Below, piece by piece: positions 1 to 33,413 of a stretch of 64,000 bases of DNA (position 1 is the first letter of the stretch; every line of letters begins with the position of its first letter). Location of the stretch: the sequence record OR844650.1. The stretch is one strand, 5' to 3'. A program made the translations under genes and the position numbers. The notes under the pieces were generated by a model. That model did no database searches. It was not told the origin of the DNA and saw only the letters and a program-made list of their open reading frames with translations.

Positions 1-261
1 AAAATCAACATCAGTTCTTACTTCTTTTCCTTCTTTGATGAATTGTTCAGTTGTCTTTTTAGCTGTACCACCACGAGTAGGATGACCCTGACCACACAAA
101 AAATTACTTGGAGTAATATTGAACTCACCAAAATCAGGGTCAATGATAGTTACTTTTGTTTTGTTATTGATGTACACAACTTTACTATAATCAAAATCTA
201 TATCAGTTCTTACTTCTTTTCCTTCTTTGATGAATTGTTCAGTAGTTTTTTTGGCTGTCAT
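1..261 (-). CDS. DUF723-like repeat protein, probable homing endonuclease; 3' part runs off the window
   Basis: Hand translation from ATG at 261, absent from the ORF track: MTAKKTTEQFIKEGKEVRTDIDFDYSKVVYINNKTKVTIIDPDFGEFNITPSNFLCGQGHPTRGGTAKKTTEQFIKEGKEVRTDVDF. About 45-bp DNA direct repeat at ~9-55 and ~200-246. Confidence 0.7.
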   Translation of the reverse strand, partial: MTAKKTTEQFIKEGKEVRTDIDFDYSKVVYINNKTKVTIIDPDFGEFNITPSNFLCGQGHPTRGGTAKKTTEQFIKEGKEVRTDVDF

Positions 262-299
262 TTTTCTTAATCCTTAGTACGTTTCGTTTCGATGAGTAC

Positions 300-337
300 A
301 TAATACAAAAAAGGGTGACCGAAGTCAACCCTTTTTT
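300..337 (-). terminator. Composite cUUCGg terminator and sigma70 promoter (TTGACT-17-TATTAT); -35 overlaps TGA stop of upstream gene
   Basis: Minus strand GGGTTGAC-TTCG-GTCACCC-TTTTTT-G-TATTAT. Confidence 0.85.
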
Positions 338-738
338 CTTTCAATCAAACATAGTCTACCAGAATGTACCATGCGATGGTGATTAGAACAAAGAATCATA
401 CACTTTCGAATTTCATCTTTGATAGCATCTCGACTTTTACTGAACATAGAACTTGGTGTATGATCTTTGGTATTAGGGTCAAGATGGTGAAAGTCTAAAC
501 ATTCTGGATACTTCATCATACAAATACTACAACCATAAAATGATTTAACTCTGGTCATGAAATCTTTATTTTTTCTTTTGATTTCTTCAAGTTTTTTGAC
601 ATCAGTTTTTTTATTTCTGGTTTTCTTACTGGTAATATTACTACAACCTTTGCATGTATTTCTATGTTTCCCAGTATCTTTTCTTATACCAAATTCACTA
701 ATGTCTTTTTCAATATTACACGTGATACACTTCTTCAT
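325..738 (-). CDS. HNH endonuclease with N-terminal CxxC zinc finger
   Basis: CITC..CKGC; CSIC...LDFHHLDP...CMILCSNHHRMVH. Confidence 0.85.
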   Translation of the reverse strand: MKKCITCNIEKDISEFGIRKDTGKHRNTCKGCSNITSKKTRNKKTDVKKLEEIKRKNKDFMTRVKSFYGCSICMMKYPECLDFHHLDPNTKDHTPSSMFSKSRDAIKDEIRKCMILCSNHHRMVHSGRLCLIERKKG

Positions 739-750
739 TGTTTAATCCAT

Positions 751-1038
751 TTATTCAACAATCCCCAACTTCACAATCTCATACCCGTCCAGATAGCCGT
801 AGGAACACTCAGGTGTTTCATAAGATGAACCATCATGGATGCCTTGGCATTGACTTTTGGAATTCTCAAGCAATCGTTGCAGTACTGATACGTCATCAAG
901 AACGTAATACAAGTTAGCATATAGGTCCGTTACAATACAGTACTCCAACATATCAAATGTATCAATCGAAATTTCAACCTTAGCAAATCGTTTCTTTTCT
1001 TTATTATACAGTGCGTACATATTAATCTCCATAATCAA
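751..1038 (-). CDS. hypothetical protein, paralog-like to 2883..3137
   Basis: MYALYNKEKKRF...YEIVKL resembles MFALRNKNTKEI...YEILQL. Confidence 0.7.
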   Translation of the reverse strand: MIMEINMYALYNKEKKRFAKVEISIDTFDMLEYCIVTDLYANLYYVLDDVSVLQRLLENSKSQCQGIHDGSSYETPECSYGYLDGYEIVKLGIVE

Positions 1039-1393
1039 GTTTAACTAACTTACCACCCAGATACCCAAAGTTTTCTGGCTTCGCATCTGAATAGAAGAAG
1101 TCAGTACTTAACTCTGAATTCAATGCTAAAGCACACAACTCCACCCAAAATAAACCCCTATGTTGTACTGGCTTACAACGTTTCTGTATAGTTACTAGTC
1201 CAGTACATGATGACCACAACGTAGGGCAGATACCACTATTACTACGCTTGGAGTACTGCATCCACGAACGTTCATTGAGGTTAGCTATCATCCCTGTTAA
1301 GAATAGCTTCCAACTTTTAAAGGTTGGAATCTTGATAGCATATTCCCCAATGAGTATGACAGTTCGTGTTGCACCTTTCAAATCTATATTCAT
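1022..1393 (-). CDS. minimal protein-kinase-like protein
   Basis: GATRTV..YAIKIP (beta3 Lys), DAKPENFG (catalytic loop), LDYG (DFG-like). Confidence 0.65.
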   Translation of the reverse strand: MNIDLKGATRTVILIGEYAIKIPTFKSWKLFLTGMIANLNERSWMQYSKRSNSGICPTLWSSCTGLVTIQKRCKPVQHRGLFWVELCALALNSELSTDFFYSDAKPENFGYLGGKLVKLDYGD

Positions 1394-1402
1394 ATTTTTT
1401 AA

Positions 1403-1654
1403 TTAGAAGAACACAAACCAAGTCCAGAATAAATTCCACACTACAAATAAAGACATAGTGGTTTTATGTACAATATCAGCAGTACTGGTCCATCCTCCAC
1501 CGTGTCCTATTCCATTTATGAATAGAACTAAGAACAAGATACCATTTACTACAATAGTACATAGTAAGTACACAAACACATTCCATGCAAGTTCAGGGGA
1601 TACTAACGTAAATGGTAAAACAATTAGTAGTATTAGAACTAATAAAATTTTCAT
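1403..1654 (-). CDS. small membrane protein
   Basis: Three hydrophobic segments. Confidence 0.7.
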   Translation of the reverse strand: MKILLVLILLIVLPFTLVSPELAWNVFVYLLCTIVVNGILFLVLFINGIGHGGGWTSTADIVHKTTMSLFVVWNLFWTWFVFF

Positions 1655-1682
1655 TTATCGCCTCACTTAATTAACGTGACAA

Positions 1683-1859
1683 TTAGTACGAATCAGATTC
1701 CCAGTACTCGATTGCTTCTTTCAGCAATTCTTTAGCACGTTGTTTTGCAATGCGAGCGGGTAACAGATATGTGTACATTAACTGTCGCTTCACTTCATTC
1801 AGTGAAAGCTGTTCATGGTACAGTGCATCCATCAGTCGATTACGAGTACGTAGTTTCAT
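1683..1859 (-). CDS. hypothetical protein, 58 aa (not in ORF track)
   Basis: MKLRTRNRLMDALYHEQLSLNEVKRQ...EYWESDSY; AAGGA SD upstream; fills the gap between neighbours. Confidence 0.65.
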   Translation of the reverse strand: MKLRTRNRLMDALYHEQLSLNEVKRQLMYTYLLPARIAKQRAKELLKEAIEYWESDSY

Positions 1860-1870
1860 ATAAGTTATCC

Positions 1871-2425
1871 TTATTTCAAAGAATCATAGTAAGCAGTGTC
1901 AAAGATTGGAGTCATAATAACATAGTCAATACGGTCAATGTAAGTTGAACTCCACATTTCTGGTTTGTCATATAACTGACGCTCGCGTTCATTCATACGA
2001 GTCAGTACTTCTTCCAATTTACTACGTGAATCCATCAATGTATTACTCGAACCATAAGTGAAGTACTCAGTCCAATGATATTCATATTCAGTACTGATAG
2101 ATTGAATAGTACCATCTTTGAAATGAGCTAAGGCATAACCTTTCTCTACAAAGTTATCAGGTGGAAGAACACCATCTGGATTAGTTTTCAAGGCTTGTGC
2201 TAACTTTTCTTTAATTTCAGTTAACGTGCATACTGAACGAATGTTCTTCAGGTTTGATACTTGAAAATCACTGTACTTTCCAAAGAAAAAGACACGCCAA
2301 TCTTTAGGTTCATTATCAGATACGGTAGCATTAGGATGATGGGCGAGTAAACGAAGAAGGCCAGCTTTATGACCGTTAATGTAGATTTCATGGATGTGGT
2401 TAGCAGTTTTCTTAAAAGTAATCAT
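1871..2425 (-). CDS. hypothetical protein
   Basis: 184-aa ORF, GAGGA SD, downstream of a consensus promoter. Confidence 0.75.
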   Translation of the reverse strand: MITFKKTANHIHEIYINGHKAGLLRLLAHHPNATVSDNEPKDWRVFFFGKYSDFQVSNLKNIRSVCTLTEIKEKLAQALKTNPDGVLPPDNFVEKGYALAHFKDGTIQSISTEYEYHWTEYFTYGSSNTLMDSRSKLEEVLTRMNERERQLYDKPEMWSSTYIDRIDYVIMTPIFDTAYYDSLK

Positions 2426-2473
2426 GGTAGTTCCTCGATTGTAGGGATGAGAAGTTCATCCCCCTTGATAAGC

Positions 2474-2501
2474 ATTATACAGTACTGAATGTGTTTGTCA
2501 A
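2474..2501 (-). promoter_or_regulatory. sigma70-type early promoter TTGACA-16-TATAAT with CAGTACTG abutting -10
   Basis: Minus strand TTGACA aacacattcagtactg TATAAT. Confidence 0.8.
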
Positions 2502-2502
2502 C

Positions 2503-2898
2503 TCAAAATAAATTCATTTCATGTGCGTATTGTGGTTCAAGATAAGATAAGTTTTTGAAACTGTCTTTCAATTCCGCAGCATCTACGTACACAGTACCAG
2601 GTACATTCCCCATAGTGAAGCCAACCCAAACAGACATGTTTCCAGTTCCTAAGCGGGGCATTGATAGCGTCCCATCAGGTGAAACATCAAACGCTACACT
2701 AAAGTCATCCGTTACAACTTCCGAACCATTTTCCAGAATAATACAACCACGTTCTTTAAGCTTCTGAATGTGGATAGCAGCCTCTACAGCACGTTTAAAG
2801 TTATAGTAAGACTCTTTATCCTCAAACATAGATTGTTTAACCAGACGCTTGTTTAGCTCGGTTACTTTGTGCATTTGACGCATTACTTCAACTCCCAC
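2503..2898 (-). CDS. hypothetical protein
   Basis: 131-aa ORF in operon. Confidence 0.7.
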   Translation of the reverse strand: MGVEVMRQMHKVTELNKRLVKQSMFEDKESYYNFKRAVEAAIHIQKLKERGCIILENGSEVVTDDFSVAFDVSPDGTLSMPRLGTGNMSVWVGFTMGNVPGTVYVDAAELKDSFKNLSYLEPQYAHEMNLF

Positions 2899-3137
2899 AG
2901 TTGTAGAATTTCATAAGAGCCTGGTGGTGCTGGATTGATAATCTCAGGGTATTCAGTACTGTTAGGATTACCACCAGCATTGAACTCAGCAAGTAATAAT
3001 TCGAGTTCATTCCTATCATGTACAACAAACACGCAATATCCAGTTCCTTCTTCAAGAACTGTAGTTGATCCCGCACAATCCCATACGGTATCTAAACATA
3101 ATATTTCTTTAGTGTTTTTGTTACGCAATGCAAACAT
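2883..3137 (-). CDS. hypothetical protein, paralog-like to 751..1038
   Basis: Shared N- and C-terminal motifs; GGAG SD. Confidence 0.7.
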   Translation of the reverse strand: MFALRNKNTKEILCLDTVWDCAGSTTVLEEGTGYCVFVVHDRNELELLLAEFNAGGNPNSTEYPEIINPAPPGSYEILQLWELK

Positions 3138-3146
3138 ATATGTCTC

Positions 3147-3491
3147 CTATCGATTCGGCATATTCTTTCGTAGTCGCAAGAGAAATTCAACCACTGACCA
3201 TGTTGCAATGAAGGCAATATAAGTTGCAAGGAATCCGGTAAGAATAAATGCAACCAGCGTACTACCATTTGGTGCAGCAGTTTTAATGCCGATGACACCA
3301 TCGACTACAGTGAAACATGTAGCCATGAATGTGTAACATACGTACAACACAAAGAAAAACTCATTCTCCATTGAAGGATAGAAACGGTTAAACACTTTAT
3401 AAAATTTAAAGTACAGTAGGATTATACCAACAAAGGCATAGAATGTAAACAGTGTTGTTATAATATATGAGATTAGGTTCAAATTATACAT
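3147..3491 (-). CDS. membrane protein, tandem paralog 1 of 3
   Basis: 3 TM segments; FKFYKVFNRFYP and C-terminal LRKNMPNR. Confidence 0.75.
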   Translation of the reverse strand: MYNLNLISYIITTLFTFYAFVGIILLYFKFYKVFNRFYPSMENEFFFVLYVCYTFMATCFTVVDGVIGIKTAAPNGSTLVAFILTGFLATYIAFIATWSVVEFLLRLRKNMPNR

Positions 3492-3492
3492 A

Positions 3493-3840
3493 TCAACGCT
3501 CCGGTAGATTATCACGTAATGTTTTAATTCGATGATACATTTTCATACCAATATTACCAAAGATACCATATCCAAGTACTAAAATGTATGCAATAAGCAT
3601 AGTAATAATTACTATAGTACCAAAACTATAATGTACACTACTGATACCCATTGTAGTTTCAACGATTATTTGAGAAACTGAAAGAATCAAAAGTACAACT
3701 ACAATTGGATGATTTGGGTACATTCGGTTGAACAACGTTTTGTACTTAAAGAAGCACAGTACTCCACCAAATAAGAAGTAAACAATGTAAATGCAAGCAA
3801 CAGCATAGGCAAACATGTTAGTGTAATAAATCATTACCAA
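3493..3840 (-). CDS. membrane protein, tandem paralog 2 of 3
   Basis: 3 TM segments; FKYKTLFNRMYP and C-terminal LRDNLPER. Confidence 0.75.
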   Translation of the reverse strand: MVMIYYTNMFAYAVACIYIVYFLFGGVLCFFKYKTLFNRMYPNHPIVVVLLILSVSQIIVETTMGISSVHYSFGTIVIITMLIAYILVLGYGIFGNIGMKMYHRIKTLRDNLPER

Positions 3841-3843
3841 TCC

Positions 3844-4182
3844 TTACTTTTCAGGGATATTAGAACGCCATATATCAATGCGATGAACTAGTCCAAAGAA
3901 CAACCATACTGGAACGGCAGCTATCATAACAACAAATGAAAACCCAGTCAAGACCGATACCAGATTTAATTCATCAGTACTATACCCACATATCAGTACT
4001 TCTAATATTCCCCACGTACATGCACAAAACATCAAGAATGAAATTGGGGCATCATAGTAGATACGTTCATATAAAGTAGTGTATCGGAAGAATGCAATAA
4101 TGTAGCAAAACATATAATACACCCAAACCAAAGATACTACATAAAATGATACTTTGTTTATTAATTCAAAATATTGTTCCAT
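3844..4182 (-). CDS. membrane protein, tandem paralog 3 of 3
   Basis: 3 TM segments; FRYTTLYERIYY and C-terminal WRSNIPEK. Confidence 0.75.
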   Translation of the reverse strand: MEQYFELINKVSFYVVSLVWVYYMFCYIIAFFRYTTLYERIYYDAPISFLMFCACTWGILEVLICGYSTDELNLVSVLTGFSFVVMIAAVPVWLFFGLVHRIDIWRSNIPEK

Positions 4183-4184
4183 TT

Positions 4185-4466
4185 TTACCCCAATATATAT
4201 TCAGAGAGTAATGTATTAGCTTCATCTTTGTTCTTAAGGTAATACATGTAATATAGATTCGGTTCACCATCTTTAGCACTCAAATCGAAGTACTTTAAAC
4301 TATGTACTTTCATAGTAAAAACAAATAATGACTTAAAACCAATCTCACCGTACTTAACAAATAGTTCATCCAAATGAATGTAACTTTTTGATTTGGATAA
4401 TTCTTTAACGTCTGCATCAATTTCAGATAAAAGATGCTTACCTATTAAGTTTTCAAATGAACGCAT
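4185..4466 (-). CDS. hypothetical protein
   Basis: 93-aa ORF with AAGGA SD. Confidence 0.7.
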   Translation of the reverse strand: MRSFENLIGKHLLSEIDADVKELSKSKSYIHLDELFVKYGEIGFKSLFVFTMKVHSLKYFDLSAKDGEPNLYYMYYLKNKDEANTLLSEYILG

Positions 4467-4527
4467 GATTTTATCCTTTACCGCAATTTTTATGGTTTAT
4501 TAAGAATACATCAGAACATCAGTTCTG

Positions 4528-5169
4528 TCAATAAAAAACTGGATCTTCTTCAGTAATTGGTATTTCTCTACGCACATCACACGAAAGAGGATCAGTAATG
4601 AATACATTCCCATCTTTATCCATCATTACATTACTTGAATGAATGTCTGGTACAAAACGCCCGTGAAACTCTTTCATGATGTTAGCAGCGACCGTCGCAA
4701 TAGCAATCTCTTCAGAATTTCCACGCATATCATTCACTGAAGTAGCGTACTGACCAGCATGTGCATAAGAATATAAATCTCCAATTTTAGTACTAACAAA
4801 GTCATCATAATTATTTTTTTGTTTAATTATAGGATAGTACTTGTCCATCTCATACCATCCAAAGTTTCCTTGTTCGTTGGCACTGTAGATCACTGGAAGA
4901 AACTTGGTTCCTGCGTTTTCAATGCAGTACTTTGCATAAGCACGAAAACCATCCCAGCGTGAAGTGGTTACTTTAAATGCTCGTCCAGGATAGTTTTTAT
5001 GTTCAACTACTACAGAGTACATCCCCATTCCAAGCAAAGTAAGTCCAGCAGCTTTAACTTGTGGAAAGATTACGCGTTCAGCATAAGGAATATCAAACTC
5101 CATCGCACAACGAGTTTTTGATGGACGCAAAATGTCAATTAAAGTTTTGAATATTTCTTGCTTAGTCAT
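4528..5169 (-). CDS. Ser/Thr protein kinase, T7 gp0.7-like
   Basis: LGMGMYSVV Gly loop, RAFKV, DIHSSNVMM catalytic loop, ITDP; start moved to MTKQ after GAGGA SD. Confidence 0.8.
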   Translation of the reverse strand: MTKQEIFKTLIDILRPSKTRCAMEFDIPYAERVIFPQVKAAGLTLLGMGMYSVVVEHKNYPGRAFKVTTSRWDGFRAYAKYCIENAGTKFLPVIYSANEQGNFGWYEMDKYYPIIKQKNNYDDFVSTKIGDLYSYAHAGQYATSVNDMRGNSEEIAIATVAANIMKEFHGRFVPDIHSSNVMMDKDGNVFITDPLSCDVRREIPITEEDPVFY

Positions 5170-5197
5170 TACTTTATCCTCTGTAGTTAATATCAAC

Positions 5198-5234
5198 ATC
5201 ATAACAAAAAAGGCTGACCGAAGTCAACCCTTTT
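5198..5234 (-). terminator. Composite cUUCGg terminator and promoter (TTGACT-18-TATGAT)
   Basis: GGTTGAC-TTCG-GTCAGCC-TTTTTT-GT-TATGAT. Confidence 0.85.
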
Positions 5235-5238
5235 ATTA

Positions 5239-5658
5239 TCATTTACAGTTTTCTATAACTATTGCACGTTTTAGTATTTTACTTTCATAAACATACTTAA
5301 GATGACCTTCTTCACGAATACGATTGAACACATATCCTAGTTTATCTTTTAGTACTGAAGCGGTATCAATGTCAAGATTAACTTCAACCCCTCCTGTTAA
5401 TTTAACTTTATATGTAAAGCTAAAAGCATCACCAGATTCAACCAATGGGACTACTTGTTCATACGTATTCAACATAACTCGTTCATCATTAACTAAATTA
5501 TATATTACTATATCACAAGTTTTTACCCCAATTTCCTCTAAGGTAGGAGCATTGTCTACTATAACATCTTTTACTGTATTAGCAACCTGTTTAGCATCTG
5601 CTGCATATACATTAAAACTAAAAAGTACTAAAATAATACTTAAAAAAATCTTTTTCAT
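5239..5658 (-). CDS. exported protein
   Basis: Signal peptide MKKIFLSIILVLFSFNVYA. Confidence 0.75.
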   Translation of the reverse strand: MKKIFLSIILVLFSFNVYAADAKQVANTVKDVIVDNAPTLEEIGVKTCDIVIYNLVNDERVMLNTYEQVVPLVESGDAFSFTYKVKLTGGVEVNLDIDTASVLKDKLGYVFNRIREEGHLKYVYESKILKRAIVIENCK

Positions 5659-5667
5659 TATATATCC

Positions 5668-5985
5668 TTATTTTATTTTACACGTCATATCGGGTTGTGC
5701 TGGTTTATTATTTTTAAACGGATTAGGTTTTTTATCTTTCTTTTTATCTTTTAAAGGTTTTTTGTCTTCTTTTTTATCTTTGTCTTTTTTATTTTTATCA
5801 GGTTCAGAGGGAGTATTACATTGTGCTGGGGGTTGATTAGTTGGAGTACAGCTATTGTCTGATGGGAGTATTACTTCTTTACAATTGTAAAATAGTAAAC
5901 TTTTATTTGTGGTTAAATTATGAAAACGATAGTTACGTTCATTATTATAATAAATTGTTTTAGTACTTTCAATGTCATTGCACAT
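5668..5985 (-). CDS. hypothetical protein with Lys/Asp-rich low-complexity tail
   Basis: PDKNKKDKDKKEDKKPLKDKKKDKKP. Confidence 0.55.
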   Translation of the reverse strand: MCNDIESTKTIYYNNERNYRFHNLTTNKSLLFYNCKEVILPSDNSCTPTNQPPAQCNTPSEPDKNKKDKDKKEDKKPLKDKKKDKKPNPFKNNKPAQPDMTCKIK

Positions 5986-5995
5986 TGCTACTGAA

Positions 5996-6247
5996 TCACC
6001 GGAACTCTTTTTCTATTCCCATTACATCAGTCTTACGCTCAGATAGTATACCTGAAGTATATGAATCTTTGTTGTCAAACGCATTAAATCCAATAGTTCT
6101 GTCGGTGTCGTGTATTATTCCTTTTGTGTATGAGGTAGTATAGAACTCCCCATTTCTGAAATCCTGCCTTGCTACTGAGCAATGATAATCTGCACCATAA
6201 GCAGTACTGGAAAATAATACAATTCCAAATATAATATATTTTTTCAT
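5996..6247 (-). CDS. small exported protein
   Basis: Signal peptide MKKYIIFGIVLFSSTAYG; the track start at 6307 is a TTG inside the terminator. Confidence 0.7.
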   Translation of the reverse strand: MKKYIIFGIVLFSSTAYGADYHCSVARQDFRNGEFYTTSYTKGIIHDTDRTIGFNAFDNKDSYTSGILSERKTDVMGIEKEFR

Positions 6248-6276
6248 TGTAATCCCTCTTCTTAATTCCTCTTTTG

Positions 6277-6313
6277 TATTTACAAAAAAAAGGCTGACCG
6301 AAGTCAACCTTTT
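6277..6313 (-). terminator. cUUCGg terminator followed by TAAATA late-promoter core
   Basis: GGTTGAC-TTCG-GTCAGCC-T8-G-TAAATA. Confidence 0.8.
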
Positions 6314-6319
6314 AAATGT

Positions 6320-7831
6320 TTATTTTTTATCCTTTCCAACACCACTGTCGTACTCTTTGAATGAGTTATCAAGTGTAGTTAGTGCATACTCATATGCTTC
6401 TGGTGATTCAATGTCAACATCATCTGCACCATTTACTAAATCAGCCCACGCCTTTTGAAGTTTACGAGCATTGTTACCAACATTATCTTTAATCCAACTA
6501 ATGTTTTTGTTGATACTTTTACGATCAGCACCTGCTTTTTTGCCAATCTCGGATATCCACATCATTAGCTTTTGAAGTTCATGAATTGATTTATCGGTCA
6601 TTTCAAGATGTTCTTCTTCCATACCTTCGGAATCAGATGAACCAACGTCAATTCCATGTTTAGCTAATAGTTTACCAAGTTCAAAGAATGCAGCTTCAGC
6701 AGGGAAGTCATAACCTTTCTCTTTGTAGTTATTCCATGCACTATCAAACTCGTCAACAAAACGGTTAGCATAATCTGGATTTTTAACTAATGCTTTATAT
6801 ACTGCAATTGCATGTTCAAAACCTTCTTTATCTGACCCAAACTCTTCCATCTCAGGACGATGAATGTATCCATCCATATCAACGGTATCAGGTAGTTCTT
6901 CTTGCTCAGGCTCAACATCTTTCTGTTCAACTGCACCCTCTTCATCTGCACGCTTTAGATAACCATCTGGTGTTACCTTCTCACCATGTTCTGCTTCATA
7001 CTTTTTCATAGTGTTGAATGCAGCATCCATAGCTGTTACGAAGCGACTTTTCTCACCTTGTACATAAGATTTAAGTGCACTGTTAACTGCATCTGATACG
7101 AGCTTAACCTTATCGTCTTTACCTTCTAAACGGTTTTCAAGTTTAGCCAGTACATTCTTGACTTGCTGGGCATTAGCACGGTCCGCTTTACCAATATTAT
7201 CAAAAGTTTTAAGAATACCATCAAGACTTGCTTCACCCTGTTCAGGTTCTTTGGAATCTTCTTTGTGTGTACCTTCAAGTGCACGCATGATAGTACTGAA
7301 TACTTCAGTTGGTTCAGTGCTCTTATTACCTTTCATTACATCAAGTACAGCTTGTGCTTTACCTTTGAGTTCTTCTTTAGGAACTGCCTGTAGTGCTTTG
7401 ACAATACCCTGAATCAACTGTGGTTTGTTAGCAAAGATCTTACCTAAGTTATCTGATAACTCTTTAACAGGGTTAGCAGCTTTAGGTACTTCTGCTTTTG
7501 GTTCTTCTTTAGGAACTGCTTGTTCTTTCTCAGCACGTTCCATATCAGCTAGGCGTTGTTTTTGTGTAGCATTAAGAAGTCCCAATGAATTAACATAACG
7601 TAGCTTTTCTAGCTCAGTCATGTTCTCAGTACTCTTAACTTCACCTGCTTCTGCGTTTGCTTTACCAGCTAGACCAGTTCCTTGGTTACGTGACCCACGT
7701 GAACCTTGACCTGCTTGATAACTATTTGGACGGCGGTTGCGTTCACTCCATTTATCAGAGTGACCAGCCATGTTACCACCATTTTTATCAGTAAAATTAC
7801 TTGGCATTTGATTTCTCTCCATAGATTTCAT
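6320..7831 (-). CDS. 503-aa charged, helical protein; possible virion internal protein
   Basis: Low-complexity Lys/Glu/Ala-rich sequence; TATAAATA upstream. Confidence 0.6.
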   Translation of the reverse strand: MKSMERNQMPSNFTDKNGGNMAGHSDKWSERNRRPNSYQAGQGSRGSRNQGTGLAGKANAEAGEVKSTENMTELEKLRYVNSLGLLNATQKQRLADMERAEKEQAVPKEEPKAEVPKAANPVKELSDNLGKIFANKPQLIQGIVKALQAVPKEELKGKAQAVLDVMKGNKSTEPTEVFSTIMRALEGTHKEDSKEPEQGEASLDGILKTFDNIGKADRANAQQVKNVLAKLENRLEGKDDKVKLVSDAVNSALKSYVQGEKSRFVTAMDAAFNTMKKYEAEHGEKVTPDGYLKRADEEGAVEQKDVEPEQEELPDTVDMDGYIHRPEMEEFGSDKEGFEHAIAVYKALVKNPDYANRFVDEFDSAWNNYKEKGYDFPAEAAFFELGKLLAKHGIDVGSSDSEGMEEEHLEMTDKSIHELQKLMMWISEIGKKAGADRKSINKNISWIKDNVGNNARKLQKAWADLVNGADDVDIESPEAYEYALTTLDNSFKEYDSGVGKDKK

Positions 7832-7848
7832 TTTTTTCTCTATGTCTA

Positions 7849-7892
7849 TATTTATAGTATAAAGAAAAGGCTGACCGAAGTCAACCTTATTT
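7849..7892 (-). promoter_or_regulatory. Composite cUUCGg terminator, sigma70 promoter (TTGACT-17-TATACT) and overlapping late promoter TATAAATA
   Basis: GGTTGAC-TTCG-GTCAGCC-TTTTCTT-TATAC-TATAAATA. Confidence 0.85.
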
Positions 7893-7894
7893 TG

Positions 7895-8008
7895 TTACTT
7901 AGATTGTTCTTGTGCAGGTGGATTTACTTTTTGATCCACTACATAGAATACACCACCAACCAGTACTGCGGCGATGAGTGCAGCAACTACAAATTTTAAA
8001 CCTTGCAT
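7895..8008 (-). CDS. 37-aa single-pass membrane microprotein (not in ORF track)
   Basis: MQGLKFVVAALIAAVLVGGVFYVVDQKVNPPAQEQSK; GAGGT SD; promoter upstream and terminator downstream. Confidence 0.75.
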   Translation of the reverse strand: MQGLKFVVAALIAAVLVGGVFYVVDQKVNPPAQEQSK

Positions 8009-8037
8009 ATATGATACCTCAGTTATATTGAGAAGTT

Positions 8038-8075
8038 ATGATACAACAAAGGGCTGACCTTAGTCAACCCTTTTT
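8038..8075 (-). terminator. Variant composite terminator and promoter (TTGACT-18-TATCAT)
   Basis: GGGTTGAC-TAAG-GTCAGCCC-TTTGTTG-TATCAT. Confidence 0.8.
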
Positions 8076-8076
8076 A

Positions 8077-8460
8077 TTACTTCTTGAACTTATGTTTTTC
8101 ACTTTCGATTGCATTCACGATTTCATCATGAATTTTACGAAGATTGTGAGTTTTCTTGAGAGAATCATGCAATGCACGGAATGCAGAGTGTACAGTTGCT
8201 TTAAAGTGCTCTTTAGGAGTTACTTTAAGTTTCTCGATAATATCACGTACATAGATTGGGTGATCCTCAAACACACGATTAAGCTCATGACCTAGTGATT
8301 CTAGGCTAAATGCTTTTTCACGGGATGGACGATCATGTGCAAGACTTTGGTCTGGTTTTAGAAGACCTAGTGAATCTAGATACTTGTGCTTATGTGCATT
8401 GTCTAGACCAGAAATATCAACATCATGTGATGGATCTTTCTTATTCCATTTATCAACCAT
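8077..8460 (-). CDS. hypothetical late protein
   Basis: KYLDSLGLL matches RYVNSLGLL in 6320..7831; TATAAATA upstream. Confidence 0.7.
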   Translation of the reverse strand: MVDKWNKKDPSHDVDISGLDNAHKHKYLDSLGLLKPDQSLAHDRPSREKAFSLESLGHELNRVFEDHPIYVRDIIEKLKVTPKEHFKATVHSAFRALHDSLKKTHNLRKIHDEIVNAIESEKHKFKK

Positions 8461-8496
8461 TTTTATAACTCCTATAAGAGATAAATTTTACTATAA

Positions 8497-8504
8497 TATT
8501 TATA
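8497..8504 (-). promoter_or_regulatory. T4-type late promoter TATAAATA
   Basis: Exact consensus about 40 nt upstream of the 8460 start. Confidence 0.65.
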
Positions 8505-8575
8505 GTTCCGTTGTCATTTATATCGAATGACATAAAACATTATATCATAATAAGAATGGTTGTCCCAAAGTTAAA

Positions 8576-9019
8576 TTAGTACTGACCAAGTTCAGATGTA
8601 AAAATAAATGCATCCATGTCTTCCAACGTAAGTTTTAAGTCTGGTACATACTTAAGAATAACGCACTCTGGCTTCTTAATAGCAGCTTGATAAGCAGCAA
8701 TGGCAAGGGATTCCAATTGCTGTGCTGTATAATTTTTACGTTCTGCATTAAAAACTTTGTTTTTGATATCACCACCTGGGAGTTTTTCAAACTCACGCAT
8801 AACTGCGGTAAGAACATCGTCAGCAGTGTTACTATATACCCATTGGGGTAATTGCATTACATTATAAATCACACCACTATCATCCATCAAAGAGATCCAT
8901 TTGTACCCATCACTAGCACTGAACAAACGCCCTTTTAGTACTGTGTTATTAGTTAAATTTACAAATGCAAAAATATCTTGTTCGTTAAGTTCAATACTAT
9001 TAACATTTACCCAACTCAT
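8576..9019 (-). CDS. hypothetical protein
   Basis: ORF; likely start MSWV. Confidence 0.7.
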   Translation of the reverse strand: MSWVNVNSIELNEQDIFAFVNLTNNTVLKGRLFSASDGYKWISLMDDSGVIYNVMQLPQWVYSNTADDVLTAVMREFEKLPGGDIKNKVFNAERKNYTAQQLESLAIAAYQAAIKKPECVILKYVPDLKLTLEDMDAFIFTSELGQY

Positions 9020-9032
9020 TACGATTCCCCAT

Positions 9033-9629
9033 TCATAAATCACGAACAATATTCATTAAACACAATTTAGGTTTTATAGCATTCAACACCCATATGCATT
9101 CTTTGTAAGTAGCTATTATATCATCTAAATGCTCAGTTACAATGCTTTCTTGAAAATATTCTTCATCATTGAGCTTTGCTAATTTAGTAACATCACACGT
9201 AGGCACTATAGGTCTGGATTGTACACCCATTCCATTATTGATATTAGTGAAATGTACAAAATGGTACTTCACTACACCTTTATCTAGATTTATTATACAT
9301 GACAAATTTTCCAACTCAGTTAGTTTTTTATTACAAGTAACATTAATGAAACCAGCATTATAGGCTCTATAATCATCTACTGATATCTCAAAATCATTAC
9401 GTTCAAATATAAGTGAAATGAGTTGGTCCAGTGGTTTGACATTCATATATTTTAATGAATTTACGTATGATACTTCAATCTTAGATGAAATTATCTTTTT
9501 ACTAAGTGCAGTTAAATCTTTGTTAGATTTAACTGTTAAAACAATAGGTTTAAACCTAGAACTTTTGTTCTTTTTTGATACTTTAAAACGACCTTTACGA
9601 TTCATAATTTCCTCAATTAATAATTTCAC
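9033..9629 (-). CDS. EExxFQxST-motif family protein
   Basis: NDEEYFQESIVTEH. Confidence 0.75.
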   Translation of the reverse strand: MKLLIEEIMNRKGRFKVSKKNKSSRFKPIVLTVKSNKDLTALSKKIISSKIEVSYVNSLKYMNVKPLDQLISLIFERNDFEISVDDYRAYNAGFINVTCNKKLTELENLSCIINLDKGVVKYHFVHFTNINNGMGVQSRPIVPTCDVTKLAKLNDEEYFQESIVTEHLDDIIATYKECIWVLNAIKPKLCLMNIVRDL

Positions 9630-9834
9630 ATTTAACGTGTGGTTTATATAGCATAATTAACCCATTTTTAAGTACAATGATTGTTGCTCTGTTAGTAATC
9701 GAAACGTTTTTAATTATACTTTTTTTATATGTTTCAACATATTTCTCTTCATAATTTATACATTTAACATATTCTTTTTGTTTAGCACTTACAACAGTAC
9801 TGAATAATATCAGTACAAGTACTATATATTTCAT
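9613..9834 (-). CDS. small exported protein
   Basis: Signal peptide MKYIVLVLILFSTVVSA. Confidence 0.7.
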   Translation of the reverse strand: MKYIVLVLILFSTVVSAKQKEYVKCINYEEKYVETYKKSIIKNVSITNRATIIVLKNGLIMLYKPHVKCEIIN

Positions 9835-9851
9835 TACTATACCTTATAAAC

Positions 9852-9876
9852 AAAAAGGAATTCATTTAAGAATTCC
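9852..9876 (-). terminator. intrinsic terminator
   Basis: GGAATTC..GAATTCC followed by T5 on minus strand. Confidence 0.6.
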
Positions 9877-9886
9877 TATTTTACAA

Positions 9887-10180
9887 TCATTTATCTAACA
9901 TACCATTGTGCAAACGTTCATATACTTCAGTTCGACGCAAATTAACAATATCTTCTGCGTATTTTAATGTAAATGCCCATGCTTTTGGATGTACGTTAAG
10001 CTTCATACGAATTCGATTTTTCATCAACTCTCCACTTAAACGAATAAATTCGTGTACACCACGACTACCGTATTCAGTAATTAAATCATTAATGTACATA
10101 TCACGAAGAGTTTCATCTGCACATTCTTTAACCATTTCTACGTCAGCGACGATGCTTTCATTAACTGAAGTACTGATCAT
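9887..10180 (-). CDS. hypothetical protein
   Basis: 97-aa ORF, AAGGT SD. Confidence 0.7.
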   Translation of the reverse strand: MISTSVNESIVADVEMVKECADETLRDMYINDLITEYGSRGVHEFIRLSGELMKNRIRMKLNVHPKAWAFTLKYAEDIVNLRRTEVYERLHNGMLDK

Positions 10181-10192
10181 TTTTAATTTACC

Positions 10193-10459
10193 TTATTTAA
10201 ATTCGACTGTAATTTTATCACCTTCAACTACGAACTTACAGTTGTAGCGACGTGCCATATCCATGTACATATGCTCAGAGTACCAAGGAACATCAATAAT
10301 CGGATGCTCTGCATATTGTAGAACTTCACGGTCGCCCACTGTAGTAATGATGAAAGGAATGTTCATCTCTCGTAAAAACAGTTCAGCACCAGGAGAACGA
10401 TTAATAAATTCAGTATCATTACGTAAAGTAAATCCATTATATTGTAATTTAAGCTTCAT
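10193..10459 (-). CDS. hypothetical protein
   Basis: 88-aa ORF, GAGGA SD. Confidence 0.7.
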   Translation of the reverse strand: MKLKLQYNGFTLRNDTEFINRSPGAELFLREMNIPFIITTVGDREVLQYAEHPIIDVPWYSEHMYMDMARRYNCKFVVEGDKITVEFK

Positions 10460-10473
10460 ATGTTATCCTCTAT

Positions 10474-10818
10474 TCAATACCATTCTTTAAAACCATTAAG
10501 TTCGGCTACGTGAGTGATTATAACACATATAACATTCAGGTCAAGTATAATTTGATCATAATTTAATTTTATACGATCATCATTATATGCTCTAAAAACT
10601 ACATCGTAATCAAAGAAATTTGCGTTTTCATCATTCATTGAAACGATTCGGTATCTACGTCTTCCATCTGTATTGAATATAGTTAAACACTGTTGAAACT
10701 TTCTCATTAACTGTTTAGATAGGATATTATAATATTCAATATCTTTTTGTGAATTACGTGGGTCATCAGGAAGATAGAATGAAACAAATTTCTTTAATTC
10801 TATTTGAGTTTTATCCAT
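10474..10818 (-). CDS. hypothetical protein
   Basis: 114-aa ORF. Confidence 0.7.
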   Translation of the reverse strand: MDKTQIELKKFVSFYLPDDPRNSQKDIEYYNILSKQLMRKFQQCLTIFNTDGRRRYRIVSMNDENANFFDYDVVFRAYNDDRIKLNYDQIILDLNVICVIITHVAELNGFKEWY

Positions 10819-11251
10819 ATATTACCTCATGTGTTTCTCTTTTACTTTGTCGGAACTCATCCTTTGCTTCCTTAACTGACATGATACGAACTAATTTAGC
10901 ACTACCGCAATAGTACTGAACCTGATTACGACCAATGTCTACATGGTGGTCTGGAACTTCATATACAGATATAGCAAACCCAGCACGATGCAATTTACCC
11001 AAGTCCATAGTGAAGAATCTGAACAAATCTTTCAAACTTTGACAGCCAAATACCCATCCACTTTTGATTGAATAGATCCCATCCTCAGTTGGTTCAGGTT
11101 GGAATTGAGAAGGTGTAGTCATAAGCAAACGGTCAAATCCATTTTTAGTACTGTATCTGGTTGAATACCGTGCAAACGGACCTACAGTTCGTGCAGGATC
11201 TAAGTTAGGTTCAATGTAACTAAATTTAAGTTCAAAACGATATACATACAT
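10811..11251 (-). CDS. hypothetical protein, possible ADP-ribosyltransferase-like fold
   Basis: N-terminal VYRFE, then GPF, PEPTEDG and VFGCQSL; fold call is speculative. Confidence 0.4.
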   Translation of the reverse strand: MYVYRFELKFSYIEPNLDPARTVGPFARYSTRYSTKNGFDRLLMTTPSQFQPEPTEDGIYSIKSGWVFGCQSLKDLFRFFTMDLGKLHRAGFAISVYEVPDHHVDIGRNQVQYYCGSAKLVRIMSVKEAKDEFRQSKRETHEVIYG

Positions 11252-11279
11252 AATTAAAATCCTCTAATTTATTAAGAGA

Positions 11280-11314
11280 ATTATAACAAAAAAGGCTGAC
11301 CGAAGTCAACCTTT
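11280..11314 (-). terminator. Composite cUUCGg terminator and promoter (TTGACT-18-TATAAT); -35 overlaps TGA stop
   Basis: AAAGGT-TGA-CTTCGGTCAGCC-TTTTTT-GT-TATAAT. Confidence 0.85.
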
Positions 11315-11497
11315 GTTTTGAAGTTCTTGAACTAATTGTCGTACTTCGTTAATATTTTTACACTGCTTTACAGTGAAGTAATCATACTTACGACCATAGG
11401 TTCTTGGGTCATCACCTTCCATATACTGCTGCACATCAAAGATTTGTAAGTAGGGATGCTGCATAACACGAATATTATCACTTTGATAAATCAACAT
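11306..11497 (-). CDS. hypothetical protein
   Basis: Likely start MLIYQS after AAGGA SD. Confidence 0.65.
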   Translation of the reverse strand: MLIYQSDNIRVMQHPYLQIFDVQQYMEGDDPRTYGRKYDYFTVKQCKNINEVRQLVQELQNKG

Positions 11498-11501
11498 AAT
11501 A

Positions 11502-11852
11502 TCAATCCTTATATTTACACAAGCCACCAAAACTAGTTTCTTTAGCACCACGACGCATCATAACTAATTTAGCATATTGTGTGCCATTACTATCTTCATA
11601 TACATCTACTTCAATAAACGCTAAGAAGTTAGGGTCTGTGTCGTTAGAAAACTCAGTGAAGCTAATGTCGCCTACTGTATGCTCTTTAACAAACGTATAT
11701 GATTGTCCATCAATATATACAATATCTCGATCGTCACTATCACCTTGATAGATATGTTTAATATTACCATCTGTACAAACTAAACCTTCCAATGGTTCAG
11801 CATATGACAATCCACACATTAACATACATACAAAAAATAAAATAATTTTCAT
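11502..11852 (-). CDS. exported protein, paralog-like to 12244..12603
   Basis: Signal peptide; LVC...IVYIDGQSYTF. Confidence 0.7.
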   Translation of the reverse strand: MKIILFFVCMLMCGLSYAEPLEGLVCTDGNIKHIYQGDSDDRDIVYIDGQSYTFVKEHTVGDISFTEFSNDTDPNFLAFIEVDVYEDSNGTQYAKLVMMRRGAKETSFGGLCKYKD

Positions 11853-11854
11853 GA

Positions 11855-12232
11855 TTATTTTCCTCCAACGTTAAGTGATTTCTTGTACTGATATTCTTTA
11901 TAAGTACTATACCATATATCACCAACGTAAATCAAGTACCACGTAGCAGGATAAAGAGCCAATCCAGTACTGATGTATACGAACTTTTGGTCAAGGACAT
12001 CAAATACATACAGAAGGAAAGTTACTCCCATAATGCAAGAACAAATTAACCACAAGTTATAAGCAATCGAATCGCAAGCAAAAATAGAATCAAGCTTAGA
12101 AATTAGGACATATTTGTTTGTTAAAATGAAATGAATTACTGCAACTAAACAATATCCTGCCATAAAAATAGAAATTAAAAAAGACAGAATAATTGGAATA
12201 TTCAACAACAAAAGTAAAATAGTGTTTACCAT
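11855..12232 (-). CDS. membrane protein
   Basis: 3-4 hydrophobic segments. Confidence 0.7.
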   Translation of the reverse strand: MVNTILLLLLNIPIILSFLISIFMAGYCLVAVIHFILTNKYVLISKLDSIFACDSIAYNLWLICSCIMGVTFLLYVFDVLDQKFVYISTGLALYPATWYLIYVGDIWYSTYKEYQYKKSLNVGGK

Positions 12233-12243
12233 TTTTTTAAGTC

Positions 12244-12603
12244 CTATATTTCACAGTGTAAGTTCAATTTATCTATATCTAGGTCACGGCGTACCGATGA
12301 GTCCAAGTAAATTACTATATAGATATCACCATTACCAGTTCTTGGGTCTACAATTAATATTACGTTTGCTAATGTACCAGAATCATCTCTATAAGTCGAG
12401 ATTTTTTTATTACCGATAATACTTTCTACTTTAAAACGATAAATCACACCATCAACAACTATATTTTTACCATTTCTAGGGTCGTTAGTCAATACATGCC
12501 ACGTTCCCTTAGTACTACGACAATATGTTTCTGCTGCTGCACAATAACTAAAACATGAAAATAATGCACACACAAGTGCTATTAATTTTATATAACTCTT
12601 CAT
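12244..12603 (-). CDS. exported protein, paralog-like to 11502..11852
   Basis: Signal peptide; TYC...IVVDGVIYRF. Confidence 0.7.
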   Translation of the reverse strand: MKSYIKLIALVCALFSCFSYCAAAETYCRSTKGTWHVLTNDPRNGKNIVVDGVIYRFKVESIIGNKKISTYRDDSGTLANVILIVDPRTGNGDIYIVIYLDSSVRRDLDIDKLNLHCEI

Positions 12604-12620
12604 AACAAACCTCTAACGAG

Positions 12621-12657
12621 AAATACTTCTGTACTATATATATGTACAGAAGTATTT
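12621..12657. repeat. 14-bp perfect inverted repeat with 9-nt AT loop
   Basis: AAATACTTCTGTAC-tatatatat-GTACAGAAGTATTT, intergenic. Confidence 0.75.
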
Positions 12658-12681
12658 AATACTATAGAGATATTTTCACTG

Positions 12682-13008
12682 TTACATCTTATTCGTGAAC
12701 TTGAATTTGATAATATCAATCCAAATTTTAACATTTCCTGCAAATAGTGCTTTGATTAGCCACATAATTGCAACAAAGTTCTCAACTAAATCCAAAGTTT
12801 TAACTACTGCACCGAGTGGGAAGATAAAACTCAAAACCCATACAATTACTGAAACCACAACGACTGCATAGAAAATACGCACAATCGGTGAATCAAGCAT
12901 AAACAACTCAGAGAACTCTTTTTTATCATTATCATCAGTAATGAAGCATTCGTAAACCAGAAGCCAAATCAGAATTAAAGACGGAATTGAAATTAGTACT
13001 GATAGCAT
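12682..13008 (-). CDS. membrane protein
   Basis: 3 hydrophobic segments. Confidence 0.7.
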   Translation of the reverse strand: MLSVLISIPSLILIWLLVYECFITDDNDKKEFSELFMLDSPIVRIFYAVVVVSVIVWVLSFIFPLGAVVKTLDLVENFVAIMWLIKALFAGNVKIWIDIIKFKFTNKM

Positions 13009-13054
13009 ATTTTTTACCTCAAGTTTAAGTGTTAAGTTTCAGACTACAGGAACC

Positions 13055-13082
13055 ATTATACAGTACTACTAATGGTTGTCAA
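13055..13082 (-). promoter_or_regulatory. sigma70-type promoter TTGACA-16-TATAAT with AGTACTG abutting -10
   Basis: TTGACA accattagtagtactg TATAAT. Confidence 0.75.
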
Positions 13083-13308
13083 CTGGTTTTTCTTCAATAA
13101 GCATAAGATAACTGATTACGAAGAGTAATACCGACACAATATCAATAACAGTAAAGCTCACGGGAATGATAATAGAAACCAGTACTAATGCCACGTTTAG
13201 CAAGAATACAGTAGTGATATCTACAATCGGTCGTTTAGTGGCTAATGCTACTAGTGTAGGATAAAACATAAACAATAGTGCAACAACAAAACTTAGTACT
13301 AGATACAT
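13069..13308 (-). CDS. small membrane protein
   Basis: Hydrophobic 79-aa ORF. Confidence 0.7.
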   Translation of the reverse strand: MYLVLSFVVALLFMFYPTLVALATKRPIVDITTVFLLNVALVLVSIIIPVSFTVIDIVSVLLFVISYLMLIEEKPVDNH

Positions 13309-13961: not shown

Positions 13962-13993
13962 AAGTATCCTCAGATGCAATTTTTTTGATGTGG

Positions 13994-33003: not shown

Positions 33004-33413
<410 letters not shown>

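Follow-up and report, generated by a model that had tools for sequence, protein, structure and literature searches.

Why would a jumbo phage place the same short hairpin, again and again, between neighboring genes? The question is raised by the first 12 kb of a 64,000-nucleotide stretch of Escherichia phage ECO103 4-12-1 (OR844650.1, 351,992 bp); we refer to the whole stretch as “the window”. Six copies of a 35–40-bp repeat are found there among early genes, reading, 5'–3' on the minus strand, GGTTGAC-UUCG-GUCAGCC followed by a U-tract. The phage belongs to Asteriusvirus, within the 121Q/PBECO4 jumbo group; the first 12 kb of the window match its record at 100%, starting at record position 1, and are 96–99% identical to 121Q, PBECO4, G17, slurp01, and other Asteriusvirus jumbo phages. 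The minus strand is the coding strand for all genes in 1–12 kb, as it is for the annotated homologues in G17 and 121Q, and all six copies are on that strand. Here, we argue that the repeat is probably a bifunctional terminator-promoter cassette that would also function as a recombination patch. We consider the transcriptional role to be quite probable; that recombination at the cassettes exceeds that at any intergenic spacer is proposed with somewhat less confidence.

There are three ways in which so short a sequence could act, and the mechanism of termination, initiation, and recombination that we infer from the sequence is as follows. First, as RNA, the A-tract, GG(G)UUGAC-UUCG-GUCAGCC(C), and the U-tract would form an intrinsic terminator that ends the upstream transcript. 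Second, as DNA, the TTGAC of the 5' arm together with the first base of the loop would serve as a −35 hexamer, TTGACT. A spacer of 17–18 bp would be made up of the remaining loop bases, the 3' arm, and the T-tract, with a −10 hexamer directly after it; copies 2 and 6 have a TG-extended one. The sigma70 RNA polymerase of the host would then restart about 12–16 nt past the termination point, and the new leader would have the downstream Shine-Dalgarno sequence but not the hairpin. Where a late motif stands in place of the −10 hexamer (copy 3) or overlaps it (copy 4), the downstream gene would be placed in the late class. Third, the identity between copies would turn the cassettes into short homology patches, such that recombination could delete, replace, or insert self-expressing gene modules.

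The repeats, their fold, their geometry, their conservation and enrichment, and the hybrid junctions described below are direct observations. A search for TTGACTTCGGTCA with up to two mismatches finds 316–328, 5215–5227, 6295–6307, 7872–7884, 8055–8067, and 11297–11309, all on the minus strand; these are the six copies listed in an earlier note on this DNA. A degenerate 18-mer picks out the same six sites and no others in the 64-kb window; five of them match on both strands, giving 11 strand matches, compared to 0.18 expected from shuffled sequences. Four of the cores are identical (GGTTGACTTCGGTCAGCC at 5212–5229, 6292–6309, 7869–7886, and 11294–11311). The core of copy 1 (313–330) has the 3' arm GTCACCC, resulting in a bulged U, and that of copy 5 (8052–8069) has a UAAG loop. 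Identity between copies extends over 28–35 bp. The complete 352-kb genome has nine copies, all on the minus strand, with six in the window and three at 302–312 kb. On the circular map, they are confined to a single 61-kb arc (302–352 kb plus 0–11 kb), with none in the remaining 290 kb.

The position of the copies relative to genes is equally regular. All nine genomic copies are oriented as the genes are, with a stop codon in the stem or within 12 nt of it. Each copy in the window lies between the stop codon of an upstream gene and the Shine-Dalgarno sequence and ATG of a downstream gene, with 20–38 nt from the −10 hexamer to the ATG. In two copies, the TGA within TTGACT is itself the stop codon, as the earlier note had read: it ends open reading frame (ORF) 325–738 in copy 1 and ORF 11306–11551 in copy 6. 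The other four copies (2–5) have a TAA 10–12 nt upstream, in the A-tract.

Individually, the six copies, all on the minus strand, are arranged as follows. Copy 1 (300–337) consists of the −10 hexamer TATTAT (300–305), a T-tract, the hairpin GGGUUGAC-UUCG-GUCACCC (313–331; −15.8 kcal/mol), and an A-tract reaching to 337. Its TGA (325–327) ends an HNH gene, and the copy is a hybrid (see below). Copy 2 (5198–5234) has a TG-extended −10 hexamer, TATGAT (5198–5203), and a hairpin at 5207–5234 (−16.6 kcal/mol). It is located between the stop codon of ORF 5239–5658 and a protein kinase gene with a start at 5169 that is supported by a Shine-Dalgarno sequence. Copy 3 (6277–6313) has a hairpin at 6288–6313 (−16.8 kcal/mol), then U8, then a late-promoter-like TAAATA (6277–6282), and it separates a 503-amino-acid virion structural gene from ORF 5996–6250. 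Copy 4 (7849–7892), upstream of the virion structural protein gene 6320–7831, has a hairpin at 7867–7888 (−12.4 kcal/mol) and a −10 hexamer, TATACT (7856–7861), that overlaps the late motif TATAAATA (7849–7856). Copy 5 (8038–8075) lies between structural gene 8077–8460 and a 37-amino-acid ORF (7895–8008); it has a hairpin at 8049–8074 with the UAAG loop (−17.6 kcal/mol), a weak U-tract (UUUGUUG), and the −10 hexamer TATCAT (8038–8043). Copy 6 (11280–11314) has a TG-extended consensus −10 hexamer, TATAAT (11280–11285), and a hairpin at 11291–11314 (−14.0 kcal/mol), and its TGA (11306–11308) ends an upstream gene of 63 amino acids. In a comparison of window positions 1–14000 with eight relatives, copy 2 is kept in seven relatives and copy 6 in all eight.

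In the three copies outside the window (genome positions 302444, 305196, and 311937), the loop is UCCG and TATTAT is present. A conserved leader (..ctagcccacagggtgc..) comes next, the ~45 nt examined contain no start codon, and similar leaders occur 3' of the element in 121Q and other jumbo contigs. These three copies may be promoters of non-coding RNAs.

What is the hairpin for? On the sense strand, the RNA of the six copies folds into a stem of 8–12 bp closed by a UUCG (or UAAG) tetraloop, with energies between −12.4 and −17.6 kcal/mol and z-scores between −4 and −6.5. A run of U6–U8 directly follows the stem in copies 1, 2, 3, and 6; the U-runs of copies 4 and 5 are interrupted. The antisense fold is weaker (−7.7 to −11.5 kcal/mol in five of the six copies); on that strand, a C.A mismatch takes the place of the U.G wobble at the first T of TTGAC. 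The wobble G may keep the antisense strand free of both a −35 hexamer and a good hairpin. The G17 GenBank record independently marks the same sites as ARNold terminators, with nothing further. Other terminator-like hairpins in the window (e.g., 29572–29596, 47848–47866, and 57507–57534) are built on unrelated stems without TTGAC; therefore, the element family is specific. An Rfam search found nothing at gathering score, the weak matches to MicX and PhrS being driven by terminators.

Selection on the RNA is suggested by comparison across phages. Loop variants in Asteriusvirus are mostly UNCG (UUCG, UACG, UCCG), which points to selection at the RNA level, with UAAG, UUCA, and GUCG also present. 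Among 64 viral sites picked solely for having a −10 hexamer, the three stem pairs outside TTGAC are paired in 62–63, as against maxima of 57–59 in shuffles, and both GC-to-CG and GC-to-AT changes are present. The base opposite the first T of TTGAC is G in 55 of these 64 sites.

Shielding of mRNA is a role often ascribed to C(UUCG)G hairpins in the intercistronic regions of T4. The hairpins described here might mainly guard upstream transcripts against 3' exonucleases or serve as processing sites, while polymerase mostly reads through. The unusual stability of UNCG tetraloops fits this explanation, as do the imperfect U-tracts of copies 4 and 5. However, U6–U8 right after the stem, as in four of six copies, is the classic form of a terminator, and protection leaves the conserved −35/−10 geometry unexplained. 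We regard protection as an unlikely main function; it is compatible with partial termination, and it need not exclude a terminator-promoter cassette.

The promoter half of the element raises a different difficulty, namely that promoter-like sequences are easily found in AT-rich DNA. TTGACT is made up of the TTGAC of the 5' arm and the first loop base, and a consensus scan places a −10 hexamer downstream of it in five copies: TATTAT with a spacer of 17 bp, TATGAT with 18, TATACT with 17, TATCAT with 18, and TATAAT with 18. The same five hexamers had been named in the earlier note. Generic promoter-like matches in the AT-rich window number 83, against 91.7 expected from shuffles; thus, a generic scan proves nothing. 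The strict pattern TTGACW-N16-18-TAWWAT occurs 20 times against 1.6 expected, a 12-fold enrichment, with all 20 matches on the minus strand and two of them being copies of the element. Genome-wide, 58 of 63 strict sigma70 consensus promoters are on the minus strand. The enrichment of the strict consensus and its restriction to the coding strand clearly indicate that the phage uses host-type sigma70 promoters for this block of genes. We also considered whether hairpins are general companions of sigma70 promoters in this phage, and rejected the idea: of 34 promoters, 11 are close to a hairpin of 6 bp or more, the same share as in the background (31%).

Two further comparisons tie the promoter to the hairpin. 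First, the −35 hexamer, stem, and −10 hexamer persist at orthologous copies in the eight relatives, including the WPEC3/EC.P1 group, in which identity is 80–88% and the flanks have diverged. Second, a scan of IMG/VR for TTGACTYCGGTCANNNNTT gave 151 distinct contexts, 75 of them terminator-like and 76 not. Among the terminator-like TTGACTYCGGTCA sites in unrelated viral contigs, 59 of 75 have a −10 hexamer at a spacer of 16–19 bp, mostly TATTAT, TATAAT, or TATACT at 17 or 18 bp. At three control offsets, the same 75 sites have a −10 hexamer in 6, 14, and 8 cases, and only 5 of the 76 non-terminator occurrences have one. Together, these patterns argue that the RNA hairpin and the DNA promoter geometry are both under selection.

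The same data bear on a simpler explanation, in which the copies are intrinsic terminators only, TTGAC and the TA-rich hexamer are by-products of AT-richness, and no transcript starts there. That would agree with the G17 annotation of terminators alone, with the unremarkable number of generic promoter matches, and with scattered bacterial genomes in which the same hairpin is a lone terminator, usually without a −10 hexamer. It does not agree with the excess of correctly spaced −10 hexamers over control offsets at viral terminator-like sites, nor with the retention of the −10 hexamer in orthologues even though flanks diverge. Two more points against it are the unrelated, TTGAC-free stems of the other window terminators and the enrichment of the strict consensus on the coding strand only. 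We therefore consider a terminator without a promoter to be very unlikely.

For the combined terminator and promoter, the earlier proposal that each copy ends the upstream transcript and starts a new one is supported by the stable, directional hairpins, the U-tracts, and the conserved and enriched −35/−10 pairs. Several observations detract from it. Copy 3 has no sigma70 −10 hexamer, only TAAATA 19 bp on. The 18-bp spacers are one bp above the optimum. Copy 5, with its interrupted U-tract, may terminate poorly. Lastly, the public runs that contain the sequence consist of low-depth, undirected Logan contigs (wastewater metatranscriptomes and one probable DNA run), which provide no RNA ends. Loose contig ends at 5201, 5229–5234, and 6284–6315 are mostly other repeat copies aligning in part, with one joint from 5234 to 6285.

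Copies 3 and 4 confirm another element of the earlier note, a late motif in two copies: TAAATA at 6277–6282 in copy 3, and TATAAATA at 7849–7856 in copy 4. TATAAATA is rare in the window, with three occurrences (7849–7856, 8497–8504, and 45979–45986) against 11.9 expected. Two of the three are upstream of genes labeled “virion structural protein” from PHROGs and the 121Q record: 7849–7856 precedes 6320–7831, and 8497–8504 precedes 8077–8460. This placement before two structural genes is as expected of a T4-type late promoter. In copy 4, the sigma70 −10 hexamer overlaps the late motif; in copy 3, the weaker TAAATA stands alone. The related jumbo phages CBB and GAP32 are reported to use ATAAATA before structural genes and to encode a gp55-like sigma factor (CBB paper); that paper gives promoters and terminators in separate lists.

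Do the copies also recombine? The earlier note suggested that recombination between repeats could rearrange gene modules. Reading of the sequence around the elements shows junctions of gene loss, replacement, and insertion in the element or at its edge, which agrees with that suggestion, although about half of the breakpoints are elsewhere. The most telling junctions are two hybrid copies. In WPEC3, one element lies between an HNH gene and denV, and a second lies 720 bp further on, before a large endonuclease gene; between the two are denV and a small ORF. The 5' flank and 5' arm of copy 1 match the first WPEC3 element (after the HNH gene). Its −10 hexamer (TATTAT) and ATCGAAAYGAAACGTACTARGGAT leader match the second (before the large endonuclease gene). 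denV has no tblastn match in the whole 352-kb genome of the window phage. Given that the halves of copy 1 match two WPEC3 elements and that denV is absent, copy 1 is the product expected of a crossover between two copies. In the relatives for which annotation was read, denV (endonuclease V, a pyrimidine-dimer glycosylase) is located just downstream of copy 1; in the window phage, a repeat-module HNH-type endonuclease gene holds its place.

The second hybrid is found in phage UB, in the element that follows the 127-amino-acid structural gene. Here, the 5' arm and UAAG loop of copy 5 are kept, and the sequence switches from the 3' arm onward to the T-tract, TAAATA motif, leader, and 258-amino-acid gene of a RaK2-like cassette. 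Over its first 138 residues, the product of this gene has 52% amino-acid identity to RaK2. A further junction is at copy 4: EC.P1 and WPEC3 have its 5' flank and hairpin in common, and directly after the T-tract of the hairpin EC.P1 has a different −10 hexamer and an extra 528-nt gene.

Gene content also changes at the elements. The slot between copies 5 and 4 contains only the 37-amino-acid ORF in the window, 121Q, G17, JP4, and slurp01. In UB, a 774-nt gene replaces this ORF; WPEC3 has genes of 297 and 264 nt besides this 114-nt ORF, and EC.P1 has genes of 558 and 528 nt besides it. Sequence comparison thus marks the slot as a hot spot of gene content in these relatives. 121Q and G17 lack the HNH gene 325–738; the junction coincides with the copy 1 A-tract, and homology resumes at 750. 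SD-1_S14 has one deletion that stops at the 5' edge of copy 3 and a second that takes out copy 4. The upstream flank of copy 3 differs among relatives right up to the A-tract.

These junctions could be explained without any special role in recombination, if the cassettes act in transcription only and the breakpoints reflect viable intergenic joints together with homing endonuclease insertion. The following points weigh against a recombination patch. About half of the insertion/deletion breakpoints in 1–12 kb are off the elements (1394/1682, 4480/5876, 6603/6914, and 9609/9722). Two HNH-type endonuclease genes flank copy 1, and two of its junctions involve homing-endonuclease genes, which have their own mobility. 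The hybrid copy 1 is only 300 bp from the contig end of an unverified assembly. Intergenic DNA is in any case where breakpoints are tolerated. In a hand count, about 8 of 11 intergenic breakpoints fall in spacers with an element, and such spacers account for about 41% of the intergenic bases. This enrichment over an intergenic-only null is modest, suggestive but not decisive. A Brochothrix phage and Aeromonas phage 65 have cassettes almost identical to these (see below), which means that identity may also arise by convergence. However, in both hybrid copies the crossover is inside the 18-bp hairpin or the T-tract, with halves from different parental elements, which is unlike random intergenic joining; the hybrids are stronger evidence for recombination than the breakpoint enrichment. 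The slot between copies 4 and 5, with its different genes in UB, WPEC3, EC.P1, and the 121Q group, also counts against a purely transcriptional role. On balance, we find a purely transcriptional cassette rather unlikely.

How does the element compare to known systems? The earlier note drew a link to the promoter–stem-loop cassettes (PeSLs, for promoter-early stem-loop) of T4-type phages. PeSLs were described in RB49 and phi1 as a repeated stop codon, AT-rich tract, sigma70 −35/−10 hexamers, stem-loop, and Shine-Dalgarno sequence with ATG (Arbiol et al. 2010, PMC2839356). They fall into five subclasses by position, and in one of these the stem-loop and the −35 box overlap; promoter and terminator activity were measured, insertions and deletions occur at the cassettes, and minicircles have crossovers in the loop (PMC2839356). 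PST/T4 and nt-1/KVP40 have their own versions, including middle-promoter ones (PmSLs) (Comeau et al. 2014, PMC4122927). The −35-overlapping subclass supports the link; since the window phage is an Asteriusvirus, it is an analogy of architecture.

The similarities are extensive. The element is likewise a multi-copy, intergenic combination of stop codon, stem-loop terminator, sigma70-like −35/−10 hexamers, Shine-Dalgarno sequence, and ATG. A sigma70-like early promoter is part of the repeat in five of six copies (copy 3 having TAAATA only), and a stable stem-loop adjoins or overlaps the promoter, with a U-tract after four of six copies. As with PeSLs, the copies are clustered among small early or accessory genes of unknown function (nine copies in one 61-kb arc), and insertion/deletion junctions between close relatives fall within the cassette, stem-loop included. 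PmSLs are paralleled by the late-motif variants of the Asteriusvirus element. There are also differences. The carrier is a 350-kb jumbo phage, not a T4-type phage, which is a limit of the description and not a mechanistic criterion. The element has a single fixed architecture, with the −35 hexamer in the 5' arm and the T-tract as spacer, in contrast to the five positional subclasses of PeSLs. The stem is GGTTGAC/GTCAGCC with a UNCG tetraloop, as opposed to polyG/polyC, and the conserved patch is 28–35 bp, as opposed to about 100 bp. Whereas activity and minicircles have been measured for PeSLs, the Asteriusvirus element is known from sequence alone. By these comparisons, we regard the element as a new example of a PeSL-type cassette and not as a new kind of element. 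In our survey of the literature, the element was not described for the Asteriusvirus group, no Asteriusvirus transcriptome and no reporter or inverse-PCR data for the group were found, the literal core sequence appeared in one unrelated paper only, and the RaK2 paper was silent on promoters and terminators.

The fixed architecture has a close counterpart in bacteria. Many bacterial terminators, those of Acinetobacter baumannii among them, are reported to share DNA with the promoter that follows, with the −35 hexamer in the DNA of the stem and the T-tract abutting the −10 hexamer; the RNA 3' end is at most 35 bp (mode about 10 bp) upstream of a 5' end on the same strand (Fletcher et al. 2026 preprint, doi 10.64898/2026.08.19.745784). 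All copies of the phage element that have a −10 hexamer share this arrangement and, like the bacterial examples, lie between tandem genes. The predicted distance from the end of the U-tract to +1 is about 12–16 nt, compared to the mapped mode of about 10 bp. Unlike the element, however, these promoter-coupled terminators are diverse in sequence, with no near-identical family and no proposed role in recombination. Single genes equipped with a promoter and a terminator are also familiar from lambdoid phages, where they are called morons (Hendrix et al. 2000, discussed in PMC2839356); like morons, the genes next to the element would each bring both signals along and come and go as single units.

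A further parallel is found in T4. C(UUCG)G hairpins in T4 intercistronic regions were reportedly described by Tuerk et al. in 1988 as elements of RNA stability or structure. They share with the element an extra-stable UUCG tetraloop, closed by C-G and located between phage genes; unlike the element, they have no embedded −35 box and no repeat-mediated gene shuffling.

Could the repeat instead be a mobile miniature element, or a palindromic site for a phage regulator or recombinase, that spread by transposition? Nine near-identical copies in one 61-kb arc and a core that is an imperfect palindrome might suggest so, and the authors of the PeSL work speculated about a binding protein. Yet there are no target-site duplications, no terminal repeats beyond the hairpin, and no associated transposase. 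Orientation always follows the genes, and every copy fits precisely into the gap from a stop codon to a Shine-Dalgarno sequence. As DNA, the palindrome is left imperfect by the U.G wobble, which 55 of the 64 sites have. Mobility resembling that of miniature inverted-repeat transposable elements or repetitive extragenic palindromes was rejected on the same grounds, i.e., no visible duplicated flanks, a single orientation, and a constant position between stop codon and Shine-Dalgarno sequence. We judge spread by transposition to be extremely improbable.

The terminator-promoter design extends well beyond Asteriusvirus. The exact 18-mer is present in 39 IMG/VR stretches, including genomes of the sizes of RaK2, 121Q, and GAP32. 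Further occurrences are in a contig that shares about 93% identity with Cronobacter phage CR9 and in Erwinia phage pEa_SNUABM_19, and, together with the −10 hexamer, in Aeromonas phage 65 (a T4-like phage), a contig of KVP40-like size, and Vibrio phage D483 (254 kb). In viruses, what comes after the 18-mer is almost always CCCTTTTTGC or a run like it, with a −10 hexamer next. By contrast, among 185,579 bacterial and archaeal genomes, the 18-mer turns up in 50 scattered taxa, a single time in each, and no enterobacterium is among them. Roughly half of these 50 occurrences are terminator-like, and few have a −10 hexamer. By our own estimate, chance would give about 17 hits in 596 billion bases, so that the 50 observed are within about threefold of expectation. 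We rejected the possibility that the cassette was borrowed from the host, given its absence from the enterobacterial genomes scanned and its near-chance level in bacteria; its distribution indicates a feature of phages, not one copied from the host.

Brochothrix phage A9 (127,065 bp) has a Gram-positive host, and it carries the identical hairpin, T-tract, and TATTAT at least twice, with about 33 nt identical to RaK2 copies. Its presence there implies that much of the identity is convergent. Few positions are free to vary, because the TTGAC in the stem, the UUCG loop, and the 17-bp spacer are all fixed, and the A9 element is probably a convergent design. The recurrent design of ~33 nt consists of an A-tract, GGGTTGAC-UUCG-GTCAGCCC, T4-6, a G, one further base that is C or T, and TATWAT, often followed by a ATCGAAAC-type leader. 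It recurs in Asteriusvirus, RaK2, GAP32-like phages, Eneladusvirus, CR9-like phages, KVP40-like phages, Aeromonas phage 65, and Brochothrix phage A9.

A broader and far more tentative idea follows, one that we think has a small chance of being right. The ~33-nt design may be a shared linker for the exchange of single-gene cassettes among large lytic phages of different families, with the hairpin as the preferred point of crossover, as the UB/RaK2 hybrid hints. To this might be added a dependence of termination on translation in copies 1 and 6: with the stop codon in the 5' arm, a terminating ribosome would cover the stem, tying termination to translation of the gene before it.

Jumbo phages of the 121Q/RaK2 group find use, and are under study, in therapy and biocontrol; over half of the genes they carry are unknown, and little has been described of their transcription signals. 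If the sites are combined terminator-promoters, and not the bare terminators of GenBank, the early region would consist of single-gene transcription units, and early and late genes could be predicted. Cassettes of this kind would explain how accessory genes (denV, homing endonucleases, small membrane peptides) are lost or swapped between near-identical isolates, and would extend the PeSL idea beyond T4-like phages. The element would also be a natural, highly repeated example of promoter-coupled terminator architecture, and a 35-bp insulating part for synthetic biology to try.

Other promoters in the window overlap hairpins of another kind. At 40955–40988 and 55024–55070 on the minus strand are two such consensus promoters; one has its −10 hexamer TATAAT mostly in the loop of a 7-bp stem, and the other has it within the 5' arm of a 16-bp stem. 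This overlap recalls the PeSL subclass in which the stem-loop overlaps the −10 box. At 4500–4535, minus strand, an intergenic promoter (TTGACA-17 bp-TATTCT) overlaps a short hairpin, CAGAAC-UGAU-GUUCUG, without a U-tract. One breakpoint of the kinase-region replacement in WPEC3/EC.P1 is at this promoter, at 4480.

Flanking proteins were named from PHROGs; a Pfam search of them returned no family. The HNH homing-endonuclease gene with its stop codon in copy 1 (325–738, minus strand) matches phrog_2255 (E 1e-32). On the other side of copy 1, the start of the repeat-module endonuclease gene (1–261, minus strand), which copy 1 would drive, matches the HNH endonuclease family phrog_559 (E 2e-9). 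The contig begins within this gene, and positions 1–60 are repeated at about 191–250. The 37-amino-acid ORF bracketed by copies 5 and 4 (7895–8008, minus strand) belongs to phrog_35037. The virion structural proteins of 127 (8077–8460) and 503 amino acids (6320–7831), both encoded on the minus strand and both assigned to phrog_16530, are distant paralogues (22% identity, E 5e-8), and only the element-flanked 37-amino-acid ORF separates their genes.

Lastly, several 6-bp palindromes are almost absent genome-wide (CAGCTG, 1 vs 32 expected; ACCGGT, 2 vs 18; CGATCG, 2 vs 9; GACGTC, 4 vs 14), which looks like restriction-site avoidance. The palindrome CAGTACTG has 35 sites in the 64 kb against 0.71 expected from shuffles (e.g., 880–887, 2480–2487, 17374–17381, and 33391–33398), located inside coding regions and, in a number of consensus promoters, in the spacer (TTGACA..CAGTACTGTATAAT). 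The 352-kb genome contains AGTACT 919 times.

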